64,000 bases of DNA, taken from contig NEEC01000023.1 of NCBI GenBank assembly GCA_002189035.1, forward strand, positions 248,001-312,000, written 5' to 3'. Below the pieces are notes generated by a model, which worked only from the letters and a program-made list of their open reading frames with translations, made no database searches and had not been told where the DNA came from. Shown in pieces: positions 18,225 through 62,800 of the stretch. Position numbers and translations under genes: made by a program. This DNA comes from Utricularia gibba (Eukaryota; Plantae; Magnoliophyta). The stretch's first letter is position 1. Each line of letters begins with the position of its first letter.

Positions 18225-19811
18225 TTAACCAGAAGCAGGAGAATTGGGGGAGACATCGTCCTGATCAGGCTTCTTTTGACCCTTGCGTTCGTTCCATTTC
18301 ATCCAAGCCCACCTCATGACAAGAAATCCTCCAAGGGCGTACACCTGTTTCGCCATCAAAAAAATTGTAGGAGAATATCAACATACAAAGTGTTGCTTAA
18401 AAAAAAAAAAAATCAATGCGCAAGTTTGAACATCCAATAGAAACTTGAGTTTCCATGCGATTACTCTAGAGACTTGAGTATTCCTCCATAACTTGGCAGT
18501 AGCTGGAAACCGACCTCATTATTTCTAGCAATCAATCACTCGGTGTCATGTGGTTATTTATACTGCATGGTGCAAATATTCCCATAGATACACAAACATG
18601 GTAGGATCGATGGTACCACATCAAAAAACACCAACACCAGTAAACTATGCAAAGAATGTAGATTCCGGGGAGAATTACTGTGGCCACTCAATTGGTATTG
18701 TAGCAACTTTGACTCATGCTAAAAACATAGTTATTTAATGACATCTACAGTTTTTGTTCGTGTGGCTTATGATCTCTCAAATGGTATTTTAGCAACTTTG
18801 ACGTATGCTAAAAACATAGTTATTTAACGACATCTACAGTTGTTGTTCATGTGGCTTTTGAAGTACCTTTGCAGCCTATAGTTACAAAGAATGTAGCAGA
18901 TACAATACACCATGCGTGCACCAATTTTATAACCTTGAAAATGTAATTAAATATTTTTCCCAGAGGCATGGAAAGAAGATATAAGACAATTACGTACAAG
19001 AACCGTACAACACAGAAAAAATATTACTGTTCAATCATATCTTATGCTAAATGCCATCCTCTTTGACAATAAATTCGCCATTTTTAAATAACAGCCGGAG
19101 GGTTTTCAAATCATCTACAAAGATGCATCTCTGCAACCAAATCACATGGTTGGTTTTATCACCAACAATAGTTTCCCTGATCTTTCTTGTAAAAGACTAG
19201 AACGCACAGTGAAGCATTAAAAGGAATTGATGGAGAACATGATACAATAATTTGAAGGTCTAATTACCTATTCCTCAAGCGAGCCAAATCTAATCAACCG
19301 TTACCAATTGCTGTCCCAAAGACCAGCAATATTTCAGACATTTCAGAAAGCAAAAACACATATTCCATTAACTAAAATCACATAAATTAATCAAACAGTC
19401 AGCTTCATATCGTAGCCAAATGAGTATACGAATAAGAACTAGTATCCACATACGCAAAACGAAGACAGCATACAAAAAAAAAGGGCAAAAAAGAAGCAAC
19501 TGTACCTGCCATAGAAGCACTGGATTCGTACTGCGTTCCGGTCCCTCCATTTCCGTTTTAATTTTGACAGGGGCGACGGTCTGAGGAAACGACACTCTTG
19601 CAACAACATTCTTGGGCTCATCTTCCACCGCGAGGGCCGAAGTATTCTTCAAGGATTCCTCTTTATTGGCAGAAGTCGATGAAGAACTCTCAACGACAGC
19701 ATCATCACTGCCCTTCTTCTGTAGAAATGGCAGTTTGATTGCATTGAGAAGATTCGAGATGAAAATCAAGACTGGATTTTGCTCCACTTCTTCTCCCGCA
19801 GGCTCCGCCAT
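18225..19811 (-). CDS. Small acidic protein with C-terminal TM helix, resembling plastid outer-envelope OMP24 / At3g52230-like proteins
   Basis: Exons 19811-19506 and 18344-18225 splice to ...ERSTNPVLLWQ|VYALGGFLVMRWAWMKWNERKGQKK...SG* (141 aa). Family assignment is from recall. Confidence 0.75.
18693..18861. repeat. Two-copy tandem repeat, period about 89 bp, intronic
   Basis: TGGTATTGTAGCAACTTTGACTCATGCTAAAAACATAGTTATTTAATGACATCTACAG... (18693) is repeated with a few substitutions from 18782. Confidence 0.9.
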
Positions 19812-40799: not shown

Positions 40800-43433
40800 T
40801 CACCTGCTTGTCAGTTTCACTTTCCTCACTGGAGGCTCTGCTGCGACCGCATCCTCTCCCCTGAATCTCTTCATTTGTGTAGGTAGACTTTTCGAGAGGA
40901 AACTGCATGTGTTGAACCAATTCCCTGATCCTAAATACAGTAGACAGCATCTATAAATTCCACAGGATTTGTGAAGCACATATGCACAATGAGAGTTTGA
41001 AGGCTAAAGGCTACTCCAATCGCACCTGGATCTGTTTCACTTGTCTTCTTTCTCTTCACAAAGCCTTTATCTTCATCCTGGAAACTTCTCTTGAAACCCC
41101 TACCATTCCCTGTCGTCCCACCTGAAAATCCACGATGAAATCAGAGAAGCCTGAGTCTACACACAGCAACTCATATCTTCTAATCCGACACGATCTTTAG
41201 AACCCTGCATTAGACGTGCCATTGAAAACTAAAGATTGCTCCGATCACTCTCACCTGGATCTGTTTCAGTAATCTTGCTTCTCTTCATATAACTTTTATC
41301 TTCATCCTGCAACCGTCTCTTCAAAACGAAACCTGAAGTCAATATTGTTTTTCCTTCGGCTCCTCTCTTCCCTTCCTCTTCCTGTTGGTTTCCCCCACGT
41401 AGATTGAGAAATTGATTGCTTTTGCTTTCGTGGGTATTTTCATGTTGCTGATGCTGGTCAGTGTTGAAGCTGTCGATTTCCGTACAGTTTTTTAAAGGAT
41501 ACGGTTCCGGCGCTCAGGGGTGGTGGGAGAATTGCTCCCGAGGATGAACAGTGGGGTGAAAGGTGGTGCAACTAGGGTTTCGATTCCGAGCAGTGTCAAG
41601 AAGACGATCGAGGATATCAAGGAGATTACGAGCAAAAACCACAGTGAAGATGACATTTACGCAATGCTTAAGGAATGTGCAATGGATCCAAATGAAACTA
41701 CACAGAGGCTTCTACTTCTAGGTCAATATTCTGTTCCTTTTCTCACTGCTGACTGCAGGGACGTAATGCTTTTTTGATGATTCGTCTGGGTATTCGTGGA
41801 TCTGTACTGGCCACAACATTATTTCATTCACTGTTGTATACCCGAGAGTGTTTTAGTTTTTTTTTTTTTTTTTCCTAGAATAGGCAAAGAGTTGTTCTTC
41901 TCTTCTTCTGGAAGCTCTTTTCATTTGCTGTTTTAGGAGTTTTTACTTATAGGAATATGTTAGCAATTTTTTTTATCTTGTTGTGCAGACACATTTCATG
42001 AAGTCAAGCGGAGGCGTGATCGTAAAAAAGAGGTATGCGTCACGTTTCCATTTCATCTTCGGTTATTTCTGGTTTTTTTAATACAAAAGTTAGGATCTTG
42101 GAGGATGGTAGGTCAATTCAAATACATTCGGAATACTTTTGTGCCCTTGGAATCCCTAGGATCCTTCATATTGATGGACGGGGTTTGACTGATGCAGTGC
42201 ATCTATTTTTCTTTATGATTAAATTTTTACAAATGATAGTAGAGAATATTCTTTTTGTTGTTTCAGAATCAGACTAAAGAGCCAGAGGACCAGAAATGGA
42301 AGCCTGGTACTCAATCCCGGTCAAATAGGGTTGGACGTGGGAACTATATCAATCGACATGCATCTCAAGGTAACCCAAACTAATTACGTCCTGTGTGATT
42401 TCCTGAATTGAAGTATTTAGGTTATGATGCTTTGTAGTGCTTCATATTTATTTATGGCCCCCTTTCATTGTCATTTCTTACCTTCATCATGGCTTGCTTT
42501 TGTAAATGTTGTCAAACCTGCTCTAAGAATGAACGGTGTTCCAGGGAGTGAAAAAAGAAGCATCTTTACCTAGAAGCTCTAATTTTGAACTGTCATGACC
42601 ACATCCGCTCTTTCATCCTTTTTCCTAAATACCAGATGCTGATGGTGGAAGAAGTGAGTCTATCATCAAAGAGAATGCTCCCAGTTTTTCTGGTGAGACA
42701 GTCAATACAGATCTCCCTTTAACTTTTTGACTGGTAATGTGTCTCAATATTGTTGCAAACAAAGTGAACGAACTATACGGAAAACACACAGACCCAAGTC
42801 ATTTTCCACCCCAATACCCCACAAAACTAGACCACCATCAACCGGTTATACGTCCAATAATACCTGAAGCATCTTCGAGAAGACAGGGGAGCCCAAGACG
42901 CAGTCTTTTGGTCTTACCACTATCACATTCTCCCGTCTCAACATGTCCTAACGAAATGGAAAAATTTCATCCATCATAGTCGCACAGGAATCCAAGATTT
43001 CTACACCAGGGGAAGTTAAACCACGCTTCAACTGAACGTAAGTTGATCTGGTTTAACCATAGTTGATCCTCCCCCTCCCACACCAATAAGAAATCAAAAA
43101 AAAATGAAGGGAAACAAAACTACTTTTTGGGCTAATCTTGGAAAGCTTGCCATCGACAAGGAGGGGATCGGAATCACTGCCACCGGTGGAGAGATAGCGA
43201 GCGGCGAAGAATCCCATAAGGGATTTCCAGGTAACCGAAGTGGCTATCAGGTCGATTCCCCTGCTTATGAAGTGGCCATTCAGCTTCACGGTATTTGGGT
43301 CAAGCCCAAAAGCCCGAGATATTGAACCTATGTCGATTTTCTGGTTTTCCGGCGCCGTTATCTGCAGTAATTTAGACGCCGACGAGCAGAACAACTTTAT
43401 TCTTCTAAACCCTCCTTCCCCTCCTCCCTCCAT
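40800..43433 (-). CDS. Uncharacterised protein (232 aa; resembles At3g07150 family) with basic NLS-like C-terminal repeats
   Basis: Exons 43433-43124, 42947-42864, 41332-41255, 41121-41026 and 40930-40800 total 699 nt in frame: RRIKLFCSS..FGLDPNTVKLNGHFISRGIDLIATSVTWKSL..DGKLSKISPKR..TQMKRFRGEDAVAAEPPVRKVKLTSR*. Confidence 0.8.
41339..42754. repeat. 11-bp direct repeat TCAATATTGTT (41339-41349 and 42744-42754) flanking the inserted duplicate; TSD-like
   Basis: Both copies are read directly from the sequence. Removing the interval restores a short U-rich intron on the minus strand. Confidence 0.8.
41349..42706 (+). pseudogene. Truncated duplicate of the GIP1-like gene 5' end (5'UTR, exons 1-4 partial, introns) nested antisense in an intron
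   Basis: Matches 59607-60965 with only three homopolymer-length differences that I could see. ATG 41544 reads into flanking filler and stops at 42730. Confidence 0.92.
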
Positions 43434-43837: not shown

Positions 43838-45565
43838 ATGACCCAGATCAACTTCTTTTCCCACCGCCCTATCGCCGCCGCGCCGTCGTGCATCGCCGTT
43901 TTACTCTTCCTCCTCCTAGTTCTTCTCTTTTACTCCTCCACCATCCTGCTCACTGAAACCTCCAGGCCCGTTTGCCCGCAACTCCGCACTGCCGCTCAAG
44001 TTTCCAATTTTAGCTCTCCGGAAAACAACCCGCCGCCGACAACGCCACCGGACAAAAAGGTGTGTTCTCCGCCCGGACACTATGGATAACTTTTACGTTG
44101 GATTCTTTTTTTTTAATACACACGGTGTGTTTTCATGTTGTGTGTAAAATGTCAAGATTGAAGATCTCAGGCTACAGCACATCGTGTTCGGGGTGGCCGC
44201 CTCCGCTGGATTATGGCCACGGCGGAAGGAATACGTGAAGCTGTGGTGGCGGCCTGGCGTCACCCGTGGCGTGGTGTGGATGGATAAACCGGTAACCATC
44301 TCTCTGGACGAAAGAATGGCGCTACCCCAGATTCGAATCTCCGACGAGACTTCTGGTTTCGAGTATAAAAACCAGAACGGCGATCGGTCGGCGTTGAGGA
44401 TCTCTCGGGTAGTCTCGGAAACTTTCCGCCTCCGGCTACCGGATGTGCGGTGGTTCGTGATGGGGACGATGACACTGTCTTCATGGTGGAGAATATCCTC
44501 AGAGTGCTTTCCAAGTACGACCATAACCAGTTTTACTACATCGGTAGCTCGTCGGAGAGCCATATTCAGAACATATACTTCTCCTACGGCATGGCGTTCG
44601 GTGGTGGAGGGTTCGCGATCAGCTACCCCCTCGCCGCCGCCCTCGAGAAAATGCAAGATCGGTGTATTCACCGGTACCCCAGTCTGTACGGCAGCGACGA
44701 CAGGATCCAGGCGTGCATGGCGGAGCTCGGAGTTCCCCTCACCAGGGAACGTGGTTTTCATCAGGTTGATTTTAATTCTAAAATATTTTGAAAAAAAAAC
44801 TACAGTAAATAAAAAACGCTCCTCCTCTTCTCGGCGGCTCTGCATGCAGTACGACGTGTACGGCGATCTTCTGGGTCTTCTGGGAGCCCACCCGGTGACG
44901 CCACTGCTCTCCCTCCACCACCTCGACGTCGTGGATCCGATCTTCCCGGGGCTGAGCCAGCGTGACGGCCTGAAACGGCTATTCCAATCGGCGAAGCAGG
45001 ATTCCGGCAGCCTGATCCAGCAATCCATATGCTACCATCAGAATCGCTACTGGTCCATCTCCGTCTCCTGGGGGTACGTCGTGCAGGTAATGCGAGGCGT
45101 CATCTCCCCCGCGAGCTCGAGATCCCAACCCGAACCTTCCTCAACTGGTACAAGCGCGCCGACTACACCGCCTACGCCTTCAACACCAGGCCGGTGGCGA
45201 GGCACCCCTGCCAGAAGCCCTTCTTGTTCTACTTGAGCTCGGTGACCTTCGATGACAAGAGGAAGCTCATCATCGGAGCCTACAACAGACACCGAGAGCC
45301 CCGCCCGGTGTGCAGGTGGAAGGCGGTTTCGCCGGATAAACTCGACTCGATCCTCGTCTTCAAGAAACCCGATGCCGATCGATGGAAAAAGGTTGGTTTT
45401 CCGATCCGTTTCCGGTGACGCTGTCGAGAGGCTAACGTCTCTTTGATGTGTCGTGATTTGCAGTCGCCGAGAAGAGACTGCTGCAGGGTTATGCCGTCGA
45501 GGCGTGATCGAGTGATGTACTTGTGGGTAGGCAACTGCCGGCAAGGAGAAATTGTTGAATACTGA
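43838..45565 (+). CDS. DUF604 / Fringe-like glycosyltransferase, type II membrane (two apparent 1-bp frameshifts)
   Basis: TM anchor, then HIVFGVAASAGLW..YVKLWW, WFVMGDDDT (split), YYIGSSSESH, AFGGGGFAISYPLA, YGSDDRIQAC, GFHQYDVYG, LSLHHLD, SPRRDCCRV. The frame breaks at 44462-44465 and 45106-45110. Confidence 0.88.
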
Positions 45566-46211: not shown

Positions 46212-49200
46212 ATGTTCGCTCCGCCGGCCAAGAAACCCCTTCTAAGTGCTCGTAAAAATGTGGCGGCCGAATTTGAGGGCAGTTCAACTCCCGTTTCCCA
46301 GAACCGAAAGCCGCTGATTGAAGGCCCTTCAGCCTCCAAACGCCCTGCCACCGGAACTCCTGCTCATTGGGCATCTCGACTATCCGCCATTCCAAGGTTG
46401 TATCAATTGGTTTCTGAAGCCGGCTTTTTTTTTTTTGTAGTGGCGTCCCATGTTCCTTTATTGAGTTTCTTGAAGTGGATTGTCTGTTAACAATGATTTT
46501 TACGCTTCTGAAAATGCGGTTAGGTTTCCGCCGGCTAAGACAAGTGACAAAGGGAATGAAGTGGATGCCGTGAGGCCGGTATGTGTTGGAGAGTTGCCAC
46601 AATTAGTACGTGATGCTCAACTCCTTTCCCGACAGAACCGCACTCTCGGTTGGTTTTGAAGACCTCTAATAATATTTTGTGTTTTTTGGCCTTATTTCAA
46701 CCACTCATTAACCCATTTTGGCAGCCGATGCATATACCTCTGGTGGGTTGGACGAGGAAACATCTTTGGCGTGGATTGTCCATGGCAAAAGTGTCTTTAT
46801 CTGGAACTACTTGTCAGCAGCCGGTTCTAGGAAATGTACTGTTCTTGACCTTCCTACCACTTCAGATGATGGAAATGTTGGTAGAAGCTCTTTTCACACT
46901 AAACGCTGGCTGGGTTGCATTGTCAGTTGGGACAGATCTAAGAAAACTAGCCACAGAGGTTTCCAATCGGCAGCTCTTTTACTTTGCAGTGGAAAGGATG
47001 GCAATCTTATTTTTTGGCCTGATATCTATAATGGGGGAAGCATTTCTCCTGTGGTTTTTGTTGCTTCCACTGAGTTAAAAACTTTAAATTTCTGTTCTGT
47101 CAACTCGTTGATTGCATCATCTGTTCCTAATGCCACCGACTGCTGTATTGCATTTGCTTGTAGTTCTGGTGGTGTGCTTTGGAAAATCTACTGCAGCCCT
47201 TCGGGTATTGAATGTCACCAGATGCTAAATTTTTTTAGCCATGGATATGATCACCGCCCAATGGTCCTTGAGAACTACCCAAGGTCACTCGTTTGGTACT
47301 CTTGTTTTCCATCAGATAAACCTGAAAGGCAGTTTCTTCTACTTACTGAACATGAGATTCAATGCTATGAAGTTAAGCTTTCTTCTAATTTTTCCCTTGT
47401 CAAGCTCTGGTCCCATGAAATTATTAGCGTTGATAATGATCTTGGTTTGGAAATGAACTCTTCGAATCAGGATGGAATTTATCCCCTTGCCGTAGATGTT
47501 GATGGTAGGAACACAATAAGTACCCTTATTGGTATCTTTTGCAAGGACCAGGTCGCTGGTTCACACTATACTCAGTATTCTCTTATGAATATGCAGTACA
47601 AAAGTGGAGGTGATGTTAAAAAAGCAAGAGGAAATATGTTGGAGAAAAAGGAACCTGTGCAAGTGATCATTCCTAAAGCACACATGGATGGGGAGGAGGT
47701 GTTATTTTCAATGAGGTTAAATCTAGGTGGTAAACCATCTGGTTCCACTATCATACTCTCTGGAGATGGTACTGCAACAGTGTCCCATTACTCCAGGAGC
47801 TCTTTACTACTGTACCAGTTGGAGCTACCTAATGATGCAGGAAAGGTTCTTAATGCTTCTGTGTTGCCAATTTTGGACAACGATGAAGGTGGTGATTGGG
47901 TTGTACTTACAGAAAAAGCTGGAATCTGGGTGGTACCTGAGAGGGCAGTATTGCTTGGTGGAGTGTTATCACCAGAACATAGATCATCACGCATGGGAGA
48001 TAATGATATCCCCTTGCGTGATGAGAAAAGGGGCTATTCTCTTAGTGGAAGTAACGTATCTCGAAGATCCAGTTTAGATGCATGGGGTGTAGGTGATAAG
48101 CAAACGCCCGGAATAAATGAATTTCCATGTCAGAGCTCTCAGGATGAGGAATCAGAAGCCTTACTCAATCAGCTTTTCAACGATTTTCTGGCGCATGGGC
48201 AGGTAGATAATGCACTTGCTAAATTGAGAAATTCTGGAGCATTTGATAAAGAAGGGGAATTTAACTCATTTTCCAGGACGAGCAAATCAATCGTTGACAC
48301 TTTAGCTAAGCATTGGACAGCAGCCAGGGGCCCCGAGATTCTGTTGTCCCTAGTTGGCACACTGCTCGTAGAGAAGCAGCTGAAGCATAAAAAGTTTCTT
48401 CAGTTTCTTGCGCTGTCAAGGTGCCATGAAGAATTGTGTTCTAAGCAAAGTATGATTGATTTATGTTCCGGCCATTATTATTATACAATTTATTTATTTT
48501 CTGCCTTTAGAGAAGTATTTCTTGCATTCTTATATTTCAAAATTATGAAAAGTGAAAATTATTTAAAAATAATTTTCGTTGCTGCTTACCTAGCAGAATG
48601 TTTTATGTTTTGTTATTGTGGTAACTAGATTCTGCTGCACCAACTTTATCTGAGAAGCACTGATTTTATACTTTCTACATCAGGGATGCCTTTGCAAACT
48701 ATATTAGAACATGGCGAAAAGATTGCTGGAATCATCCAAATTAAGGATCTGCAGAACAGGACTAGCCATTCTACTGCTTCTGGGCATATCTCCAGTGACA
48801 CTTCAAATTCTATAAGTTCTGGAGCTCTCTGGAATATTGTACAGTTGGCTGGTGAAAGGAGCCGGCGCAGCTCAATTCTCTTGATGGACAGGAACAATAC
48901 AGAAGTATTCTACACTAAAGTTTCAGATCTTGAGGAATTTTTTTTGTGTTTGGATAGGCATCTAGACCATGTCATCAGCAGAGATGCATCCATTCTCGTC
49001 CAGTGCAGGAGTGCTTGTGAACTCTCAAATGCGTGTGTCATGATTTTACATGGTGTCTCTCTATACAGGAGTGAGCATCACTTGTGGTATCCTCCTCCTG
49101 AGGGCCTGGTGCCATGGTATGCCAAAACTGTTGTTTGCCATGGACTATCCAGTGTTGCATTGCTCTTGCTTCAGTTGTTTAACGAAACAAGTCAACTGGA

Positions 49201-59202: not shown

Positions 59203-59800
59203 TGCTCTTTGTGAGTGAAATGCATTTTTTAAAAAATACTTTTTCAGAATTACAATCAAATCAGGTTTGCTTGATATAGTTTTTATTTATAAAAAAATAA
59301 TTATTGTATTTCATGGTACATATTGTATATAAATATTTAATTCATGGTATTAAATATTATTATTTACGTATTTAATATAAATAATATTTTATATTCTAGA
59401 AAAATTTGAGTCCGACCCGTGTGTCAAGCTTATCGCAATTGGGTGGGTCCGCGTTAAGGCCGGGTCACTGTAATAAAATATCCTGATGGTCTGCCAGCTT
59501 TTTTTTTATTAATTTAAATTTTTCTTCAAGGCGAAGTTCTTGCTATCAAAAACAAAAAAAAGGAAAAAAAAAAAGACCCGTCGATTTTTTTTTTTTTTTG
59601 GTGATATTTTCCTTCGGCTCCTCTCTTCCCTTCCTCTTCCTGTTGGTTTCCCCCACGTAGATTGAGAAATTGATTGCTTTTGCTTTCGTGGGTATTTTCA
59701 TGTTGCTGATGCTGGTCAGTGTTGAAGCTGTCGATTTCCGTACAGTTTTTTAAAGGATACGGTTCCGGCGCTCAGGGGTGGTGGAGAATTGCTCCCGAGG

Positions 59801-62800
59801 ATGAACAGTGGGGTGAAAGGTGGTGCAACTAGGGTTTCGATTCCGAGCAGTGTCAAGAAGACGATCGAGGATATCAAGGAGATTACGAGCAAAAACCACA
59901 GTGAAGATGACATTTACGCAATGCTTAAGGAATGTGCAATGGATCCAAATGAAACTACACAGAGGCTTCTACTTCTAGGTCAATATTCTGTTCCTTTTTC
60001 TCACTGCTGACTGCAGGGACGTAATGCTTTTTTGATGATTCGTCTGGGTATTCGTGGATCTGTACTGGCCACAACATTATTTCATTCACTGTTGTATACC
60101 CGAGAGTGTTTTAGTTTTTTTTTTTTTTTTTTCCTAGAATAGGCAAAGAGTTGTTCTTCTCTTCTTCTGGAAGCTCTTTTCATTTGCTGTTTTAGGAGTT
60201 TTTACTTATAGGAATATGTTAGCAATTTTTTTTATCTTGTTGTGCAGACACATTTCATGAAGTCAAGCGGAGGCGTGATCGTAAAAAAGAGGTATGCGTC
60301 ACGTTTCCATTTCATCTTCGGTTATTTCTGGTTTTTTTAATACAAAAGTTAGGATCTTGGAGGATGGTAGGTCAATTCAAATACATTCGGAATACTTTTG
60401 TGCCCTTGGAATCCCTAGGATCCTTCATATTGATGGACGGGGTTTGACTGATGCAGTGCATCTATTTTTCTTTATGATTAAATTTTTACAAATGATAGTA
60501 GAGAATATTCTTTTTGTTGTTTCAGAATCAGACTAAAGAGCCAGAGGACCAGAAATGGAAGCCTGGTACTCAATCCCGGTCAAATAGGGTTGGACGTGGG
60601 AACTATATCAATCGACATGCATCTCAAGGTAACCCAAACTAATTACGTCCTGTGTGATTTCCTGAATTGAAGTATTTAGGTTATGATGCTTTGTAGTGCT
60701 TCATATTTATTTATGGCCCCCTTTCATTGTCATTTCTTACCTTCATCATGGCTTGCTTTTGTAAATGTTGTCAAACCTGCTCTAAGAATGAACGGTGTTC
60801 CAGGGAGTGAAAAAAGAAGCATCTTTACCTAGAAGCTCTAATTTTGAACTGTCATGACCACATCCGCTCTTTCATCCTTTTTCCTAAATACCAGATGCTG
60901 ATGGTGGAAGAAGTGAGTCTATCATCAAAGAGAATGCTCCCAGTTTTTCTGGTGAGACAGTCAATGCTAAGGTCTTTCGAGCTGCCTCACTAGAGATTAA
61001 AAAGAATGGGTCTTCTCCTAATGAAAGGTGCATTTACCGGTTTCAATTGTCACACCGGATTCACCATTTTGCACTTGCAACTGTGTGCTGTGTATTTTTC
61101 CATGAAAATTTGTTTCTCATGTTTTCAGCCAAACTGGTTCATTATCCAACGACCACCCTTCTGATAGGGCATCCCTTATAGTGGTTACTATGAATGAAAT
61201 ACTTACTCTTTCTGACGGAGAACTTCACCCTTGTGATGAAAATTCCTGCAGTGGAAAGCCAAATGAACCACTCCCAGCTTCATCTCTGGATGGCTCGTCC
61301 AATAATTCTGGCTCTTTGGATACAAAGAATACAACGGCAAATGAGCTGCTGCAGCTTGGAAATAGTGGGGATGAACTTTTTTCTTCTGCTTCAGGATCTT
61401 ATCTCTCATCTTCAGGCTCCCAAGATTCATCCACTGTTACTTTACAGTCTGAACAGGGAATAAAACATGCTACTTTGCAACTTCCAGATGATAATATGCC
61501 AGGGAGAAAATCAACACCCAGCAACACTTGTAAGCTAGTCGTACCTATTGCAAATACTTTCTCTTACTGGATTTAGGAAATGAATCACTGGACTGCTGTT
61601 TTTATCAGCTCCTACCAAGATTAAGATTTTCAAATTGCCGCATGAAATGCCTAACTATACACTTGGTATTGGAGAGTCTCGGCAATTAGAATCACTTCCT
61701 GCAGTTGGTAGACCATCTTCAAATTATAATGATCGGTCTCAAGTGATTGGCCAGCAAAAAGGTATGCATAGCATATCCAGGTGTTTTCTCTTGTGTAACA
61801 TATGGTTGACTTTTCTGTATTTCTTATCAAATTATATATTCATTTCTAATAACTTTCTGGGCACTGAGATATTTTTATTGCGTTGTTCAATGAAATACAA
61901 TTATAATCATTCATGAAATTGTATAGCTGCAATTTTCCCATTCGAAAGCATTGTTGTTTGATCTGAGTATGTGCTTGAAATATTAAATCTTGTTGTCTTT
62001 GAATGTATCCTTTCGAAGAGTGGAAGCCTAAGTCTTCTCACTCCAATACCGCTGTCAGTGCGGTGTCAGTTGAACCACAGCCAGAATTAAAAACAACCCC
62101 CAGCAATTGCTTCAGAAGACTCAACACTAGAATTGGAGAAAAAATTGAAGGATACAAACTTGTCAGAGAGAAAGCATGTGGTTATTCCTAATCATTTGCA
62201 AGTTCCAGAAGTTAAAAAGCTTGGGTTTTGCTTTGGAAGCTTTGATGCTGGCTTCGAGTTGCACATGAGTGAAGGCGTTGTCAAAGGAGATTTTGGTAAG
62301 ACGTCAGTGCTTTCACAGCCTTCAATTCCCAATGATGAGCCGCTGAAGGAGCTGACGTTCAGGTACCCATGGGATCCTTGCCTTGTGAAATACCACTGCT
62401 CTTATGTTGGATTGTTTCATGACCTTCTTTGATGCATATTTATTAATCTGAGGTTCATCGATCAGGAAATATGGTCATCTTAAGTTATGCTTTTCATTTA
62501 TTTTTATAACTGAGGATGTGCCTGTCACTACTTTCGATGTTACAGAAGTGAAAGCACGAAGCTAGAAGTTGAGGATACTGATAAAGAGTATTCTGATCAC
62601 CCAGAGACCACGGTCAAACCACCCTCAACCAACTTTGAACGGAACGAACCCTTATTGGAGGCAGCTCAAGAAAGCCACCAGCATGCATCGCATCATATTC
62701 CCTCAAGTTACAATATTGGGTTACCGCCAATTGTAAGCAGCCAAGTTTCACCTTTGGAAAGTTCGGAATCTCAAGCTCGTGATGCCACTCGTGTTCCAGG

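Follow-up and report, generated by a model that had tools for sequence, protein, structure and literature searches.

The window analyzed here, i.e., the whole 64,000-nucleotide stretch of Utricularia gibba contig NEEC01000023.1 between positions 248,001 and 312,000 (assembly GCA_002189035.1), carries two genes that share a segment of DNA. The first, on the minus strand at positions 40800 to 43433, consists of five exons and encodes a conserved uncharacterized plant protein. The second is a GIP1-like gene on the plus strand, the 5′ part of which (positions 59607 to 60965) is present again within intron 2 of the first gene. We refer to the two genes as the host and the donor, respectively. Between them, at positions 46718 to 48628, there is an unbroken open frame of 636 aa whose predicted product has an N-terminal Nup133 domain (E = 4.4e-23), so that at least two genes separate the acceptor from the donor.

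Host and donor genes

The host exons map to positions 43433-43124, 42947-42864, 41332-41255, 41121-41026, and 40930-40800 of the minus strand. They form an uninterrupted frame of 232 codons, with GT-AG introns of 176, 1531, 133, and 95 nt; the exons were joined by script for this frame check alone, and all searches and alignments were run with the separate exons. Homologues of host exon 1 occur in many flowering plants, all of them unnamed proteins of ~190 to 220 aa. A word-index protein search retrieved the best matches from Lamiales, with up to 76% identity, and detected no identical copy of the exon (best match, the same 76%). Exons 1, 3, 4, and 5 were located by tblastn with four homologues. 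No Pfam family was assigned to the host protein, and in the Atlas it falls into land-plant clusters that are labeled only “hypothetical protein.”

Exons 3 (78 nt) and 4 (96 nt) of the host are tandem duplicates that both keep the frame, with 80% identity over 100 nt. The underlying duplication spans positions 40997-41096 and 41222-41325 on the minus strand, with a period of 229 bp and 80 to 81% identity, and covers exons 4 and 3 together with adjoining intron sequence, resulting in two in-frame cassette exons. Both of these encode a KR..EDK..KR.K..ETDP motif that is single in the other Lamiales homologues.

The donor gene, as read from the sequence, has its ATG at position 59801, followed by exons at 59801-59978, 60248-60291, 60526-60628, and 60895-61027. 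Its further exons, which encode GIP1-type C-terminal sequence, extend to at least ~63900, indicating that the donor gene is intact. The donor segment is not flanked by the 11-mer that brackets its copy in the host (see below). Directly upstream of the donor breakpoint, positions 59505 to 59606 comprise an A-rich stretch and a run of ~14 T's (59586-59599). This T run ends 7 nt from the point where the copy starts, and the copied leader opens with a CT-rich tract. Either the A-rich/T-run sequence or the CT-rich tract may have influenced the point at which copying started or stopped.

The copied segment

Local alignment and a repeat finder both paired positions 41349 to 42706 with positions 59607 to 60965, on the same strand and 18,258 bp apart, and the repeat finder reported this as the only copy of the donor segment within the window. 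The initial annotation had described the two stretches as essentially identical from the 5′ UTR to mid-exon 4 with introns retained, and this is borne out by the alignment: the copy (1358 bp) and the donor segment (1359 bp) differ by 0 substitutions and three 1-base indels, every one of which lies inside a base run. These are G3 in the copy versus G2 in the donor near position 41525, T4 versus T5 near 41737/59995, and T17 versus T18 at 41857/60115. Run-length differences of this kind resemble consensus noise, and both copies may thus in truth be identical.

The homology formally begins at position 41349, i.e., with a 1-nt overlap with the left direct repeat, so that the copied GIP1-like fragment proper occupies 41350 to 42706. 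The copied segment extends from 194 bp upstream of the donor ATG to 71 nt into the 133-nt exon 4 and keeps all three intervening introns. In the copy, the ATG is at position 41544, exon 1 runs to 41721, exons 2 and 3 are at 41989-42032 and 42267-42369, and the partial exon 4 is at 42636-42706. The coding sequence of exon 1 is identical between copy and donor, and the copied exon 1 open reading frame matches the GIP1_N family (Pfam PF06972; E = 4.5e-21, 75 bits against a cutoff of 26.4). The start of the copy, 194 bp before the ATG, is at a plausible distance for a site near the transcription start of the donor, judging from the sequence.

Because the 1358 bp hold no substitutions, the insertion must be very young, provided that the two copies have not been homogenized by gene conversion. 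The Arabidopsis mutation rate is 7e-9 per site per generation. Applied by script to 1358 bp without a substitution, this rate would place the insertion at less than about 1.6e5 generations ago (95% upper bound), barring gene conversion between the copies.

The junctions

An exact 11-bp direct repeat, TCAATATTGTT, flanks the insert at positions 41339-41349 (left) and 42744-42754 (right), which we interpret as a target-site duplication (TSD). The bracket, already described in the initial annotation, withstood closer scrutiny: the 11-mer is found at these two sites only in the whole window on either strand, two 11-mers lying 1 to 2 kb apart in the window are identical at a measured rate of 1.1e-6, and from this rate the chance of encountering an 11-bp bracket within 60 nt of the homology end is ~7e-5. 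Between the perfect repeats there are 1395 bp of inserted DNA. When positions 41350 to 42754 are deleted, a GT-AG intron of 126 nt remains, close to the ordinary intron of ~125 bp that had been predicted for the empty site. The insertion point is 17 nt upstream of host exon 3, and intron 2 (41333-42863 on the minus strand, with GT and AG borders) has grown from 126 to 1531 nt, with the donor sequence lying antisense to the host. A search of metagenome contigs (JGI) with exact patterns for the left flank and for host exon 2 returned no match for the insertion site.

Of the five T's at the left junction, the repeat supplies two and the donor template four, with one T shared between them. The donor homology starts with the final T of the repeat, which leaves no space for an element terminus on this side.

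At the right junction, 37 bp of filler (42707-42743) begin directly after the end of the homology at 42706. The filler had been described as unrelated sequence, a description that agrees with our searches, in which nothing in the window matched it better than chance would allow. Exact k-mers gave no such match on either strand of the window, gapped local alignment against the 200 bp surrounding each of the four junction regions gave no excess over shuffled sequences, and blastn-short against the whole window, also compared with shuffles, gave nothing above chance (p ~0.2). Two candidate sources were considered and rejected: a garbled second copy of the last 30 nt of the donor, a likeness seen by eye that was not significant, and an inverted match of 20 nt (75%) to positions 42309-42328, which is at noise level.

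The end of the copy was also found to resemble the target. The terminal AGTCAAT plus the first filler base, A (42699-42707), is identical to the target sequence at 41336-41343 (AGTCAATA). The last five bases of the copy, TCAAT, are the first 5 nt of the 11-bp repeat, and the match comes to 7 to 8 nt if the flanking bases are included. In any one fixed register, a match of 5 nt has a chance of 1.4e-3, and one of 7 nt has a chance of 1e-4. This correspondence between the copy end and the start of the repeat is new relative to the initial annotation.

Transposon features

No terminal inverted repeats (TIRs) pairing the first and last 60 nt of the insert were detected, and inspection of the junction sequences revealed no long terminal repeat, poly(A), or Helitron ends at the insert. 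The inverted-repeat test and the reading of the junctions therefore agree with the earlier impression that no TIRs, long terminal repeats, or poly(A) tail are visible. “Transposon-free” is, in this sense, a statement on the present sequence.

Each class of gene-capturing element was compared with the insert by its defining features. The exact 11-bp TSD is within the 9 to 11 bp expected of Pack-MULEs, and the flanking TIRs are absent. Helitrons are recognized by a 5′-TC, a 3′-CTRR with a 3′ hairpin, insertion between A and T, and no TSD; the insert begins with TTTCC, ends with GTGTC, is flanked by T on both sides, and has a TSD. A LINE-mediated retrocopy is a spliced, intronless copy ending in poly(A); here, three introns are retained and the 3′ end lies mid-exon, followed by filler that is not A. 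The Pack-MULE, Helitron, and retrocopy readings each fail because in each a defining feature is absent. For an excision footprint, the observations are that both TSD copies are perfect, that no transposon remnant is seen, and that the filler matches nothing in the window.

The initial annotation had left two modes of capture side by side, templated break repair and a Pack-MULE-like event without TIRs. The first is supported by these data, while the second does not pass the defining test of TIRs, and we know of no mechanism for a TIR-less Pack-MULE. Its broader reading, a very recent local capture of the 5′ part of a neighboring gene into an intron, devoid of transposon ends, gains support from the sequence identity, the retained introns, the intact donor, the bracket, and the filler.

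Repair-mediated duplication as the likely origin

We consider it likely that the insert is a repair-mediated duplication, in which a staggered double-strand break was mended by copying a template elsewhere on this chromosome, with microhomology as the primer. Three features by which such duplications are recognized are found here: an intact donor in cis, microhomology with filler and a TSD, and neither transposon termini nor poly(A). The 5- to 8-nt match between the copy end and the start of the repeat also fits templated break repair.

The proposed course of events is as follows. Host intron 2 would have suffered a double-strand break with an 11-nt stagger, the 11 nt being kept on both ends and giving rise to the direct repeat upon fill-in. 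One 3′ end would then have primed synthesis, via a 1-nt microhomology, on the 5′ region of the GIP1-like gene 18 kb away in cis, and ~1.36 kb of genomic DNA would have been copied, introns included, with the donor left unchanged. Synthesis would have halted when the nascent strand ended in TCAAT and was able to anneal to the terminus of the second end. The 37-nt filler would have followed before the ends were closed, probably through at least one additional switch of template. With overhangs in the form of 3′ tails, the position of the left junction, the bases at the copy end, and the length of the 11-bp repeat would all be accounted for. The staggered break, the direction and enzymology of the reaction (synthesis-dependent strand annealing [SDSA] or polymerase-theta-type end joining), and the order of the steps are what we infer from these traces. 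A microhomology of 1 nt at the left is poor for priming, which counts against the repair reading. The final joint, moreover, was not made at TCAAT, since the filler separates this motif from the right repeat.

Alternative explanations

Among the alternatives, the one that survives best, though we regard it as unlikely, is that the break was left by the excision of a Mutator-like element, with both TSD copies staying in place and the gap being patched from the neighboring gene and with filler. The 11-bp duplication is inside the Mutator range (9 to 11 bp), excisions in rice leave two TSD copies, usually with filler or deletions (PMC4423477), and the staggered ends would be explained without invoking an unknown nuclease. 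Yet there is no remnant of such an element, the ends of the insert are not inverted repeats, and the bases beside the repeat differ from the GAG/CTC termini of Mutator elements. Perfect TSD pairs are, in addition, rare in rice (8/94), with fillers of 1 to 123 bp versus the 1.4 kb seen here (PMC4423477), and the match between the copy end and the start of the repeat is equally well explained without a transposon.

Considerably less probable is that the template was the nascent unspliced transcript of the donor or the displaced strand of an R-loop, copied from the transcription start to the position of the polymerase. This would account for a copy that starts at a plausible transcription start 194 bp before the ATG, ends arbitrarily in mid-exon, keeps its introns, and lacks poly(A), and TCAAT would permit the right-hand 3′ end to prime toward the 5′ end of the template. 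However, all three introns would have to be unspliced, even the two that lie >400 nt behind the end point, and priming from TCAAT at the right end predicts that no filler separates the repeat from the copy, whereas filler is present. DNA-templated copying is also far commoner.

We attach marginally less weight still to an assembly artifact, i.e., an apparent insertion produced by chimeric reads or misjoined repeats. In its favor, the copies differ in nothing other than 1-base run lengths, and such changes resemble long-read consensus noise more than real mutations. An artifact would not, however, make an exact 11-bp target duplication, return to the site, and add 37 bp of unique filler. The 1.4-kb insert is shorter than ordinary long reads (the mean subread in U. 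gibba was 10.4 kb [PMC5793159], if that is the source of the assembly), and the copies must have been assembled separately because they differ at three positions.

A transposase-driven move (by a TIR-less Pack-MULE, a Helitron, or LINE-mediated retrocopying) is the least probable of all, given that the 11-bp TSD would be compatible with Mutator- or LINE-type integration but the homology starts at the last base of the repeat and so leaves no space for a left terminus, no TIRs, 5′-TC/3′-CTRR ends, A/T insertion site, or poly(A) is seen, introns are kept, and there is one copy in the window.

Comparison with known systems

Repair-mediated duplication was described in primates, where such events show microhomologies of 2 to 9 nt, TSDs of 4 to 21 nt, and fillers of 1 to 68 nt (Pace et al. 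2009; PMC2671141). Their donors are overwhelmingly in cis, they carry no poly(A) or transposon ends, and exons, UTRs, and splice sites are all among the sequences copied (PMC2671141). The U. gibba insert resembles them in its unique donor on the same chromosome and in belonging to the class that combines microhomology, a TSD, and filler. It differs in that the proximal events of the vertebrate study involve up to 619 bp within 5 kb (PMC2671141), whereas here the organism is a plant, the segment is 1358 bp long, and the distance is 18 kb. In both size and distance, the insert thus exceeds most of the proximal cases on record, a further point against the repair reading.

In plants, the copying of filler DNA from ectopic sites at breaks is established (PMC2686159; PMC4423477). 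Work on ectopic SDSA and filler, as cited or summarized in PMC2671141, PMC3445842, and PMC2686159, includes that of Gorbunova & Levy 1997, Salomon & Puchta 1998, and Wicker, Buchmann & Keller 2010. In those cases, as is proposed here, a foreign and often nearby segment is copied into a break with which it shares no homology, and filler in such repair can be composite. The insert is also akin to the gene-fragment “patches” of plant genomes, in which pieces of genes are moved outside any transposon. In the model of Wicker and colleagues, as summarized in PMC3445842, the patch and an inserted transposon share one TSD; no transposon, in contrast, is present at this site. Excision footprints (Roffler & Wicker 2015; PMC4423477) likewise consist of two TSD copies with foreign filler between them, but the fillers are 1 to 123 bp long and perfect TSD pairs are rare, unlike the 1395 bp between perfect repeats found here. 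With Pack-MULEs, the insert shares a host gene fragment with its introns and a target duplication in the 9- to 11-bp range. Those elements are defined by long TIRs enclosing the captured fragment and are mostly found in families; the insert shows neither feature.

Intron gain of the Daphnia type is modeled as the entry of DNA into staggered breaks, which leaves short direct repeats on its flanks. The present insert is similar in that a short exact direct repeat (7 to 11 bp in that type) brackets it without transposon features, and it is dissimilar in that it entered an existing intron and its source is identifiable.

Possible effects and significance

The likely consequence of the insertion is on the host rather than on the donor. 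At positions −45 to −4 of the intron 2 acceptor, pyrimidines make up 21% of the present sequence, against 64% in the reconstructed empty intron and 57 to 62% in the other introns of the host. With this drop from 64% to 21%, the acceptor of exon 3 has probably been weakened by the insert, as far as its base composition can indicate. Because exon 3 duplicates exon 4 in frame, its skipping would preserve both the frame and the motif, and this redundancy may be a reason why the insertion was tolerated. Over 1.36 kb, the host pre-mRNA would run antisense to the 5′ part of the GIP1-like gene and could pair with the donor transcript. The filler, read in the frame of the copied exon 4, gives 7 codons and then a stop at 42728-42730. 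The copy, if transcribed on its own, would accordingly be predicted to encode a GIP1_N-only protein of 139 aa that ends in the filler at this stop.

The insert is a clean example of an already known process, repair-mediated duplication, and does not by itself alter what is known of it. Its value lies in indicating that break repair alone can copy more than 1 kb of a neighboring gene into another gene, with no transposon involved, and in the essentially undecayed record of the event, in which both junctions, the filler, the target duplication, and the microhomology are still readable. In a genome known for shedding DNA, it reveals the opposite process at work.

Whether the event reflects a repair habit of this compact genome is a more speculative matter. 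We think it improbable that staggered breaks are generally patched here from gene starts that are promoter-proximal, open, or R-loop prone and located ~20 kb away in cis, with direct repeats of 7 to 11 bp left behind. If true, such a habit would also create “gained introns” bounded by direct repeats, and a mechanism of intron gain and gene fragment shuffling would become directly countable in one species.

Other features of the window

No Rfam match for a structured RNA was found in the region from 38 to 46 kb. At positions 44093 to 45236, where a DUF604 gene is situated, a long open reading frame of 311 aa on the minus strand overlaps one of 350 aa on the plus strand. The plus-strand frame matches Pfam DUF604 (E = 2.6e-38), and the 311-aa minus-strand frame is probably a by-product of composition. 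Farther to the left, at positions 18687 to 18861, two copies of an 86- to 89-bp unit are arranged head to tail with 91% identity.
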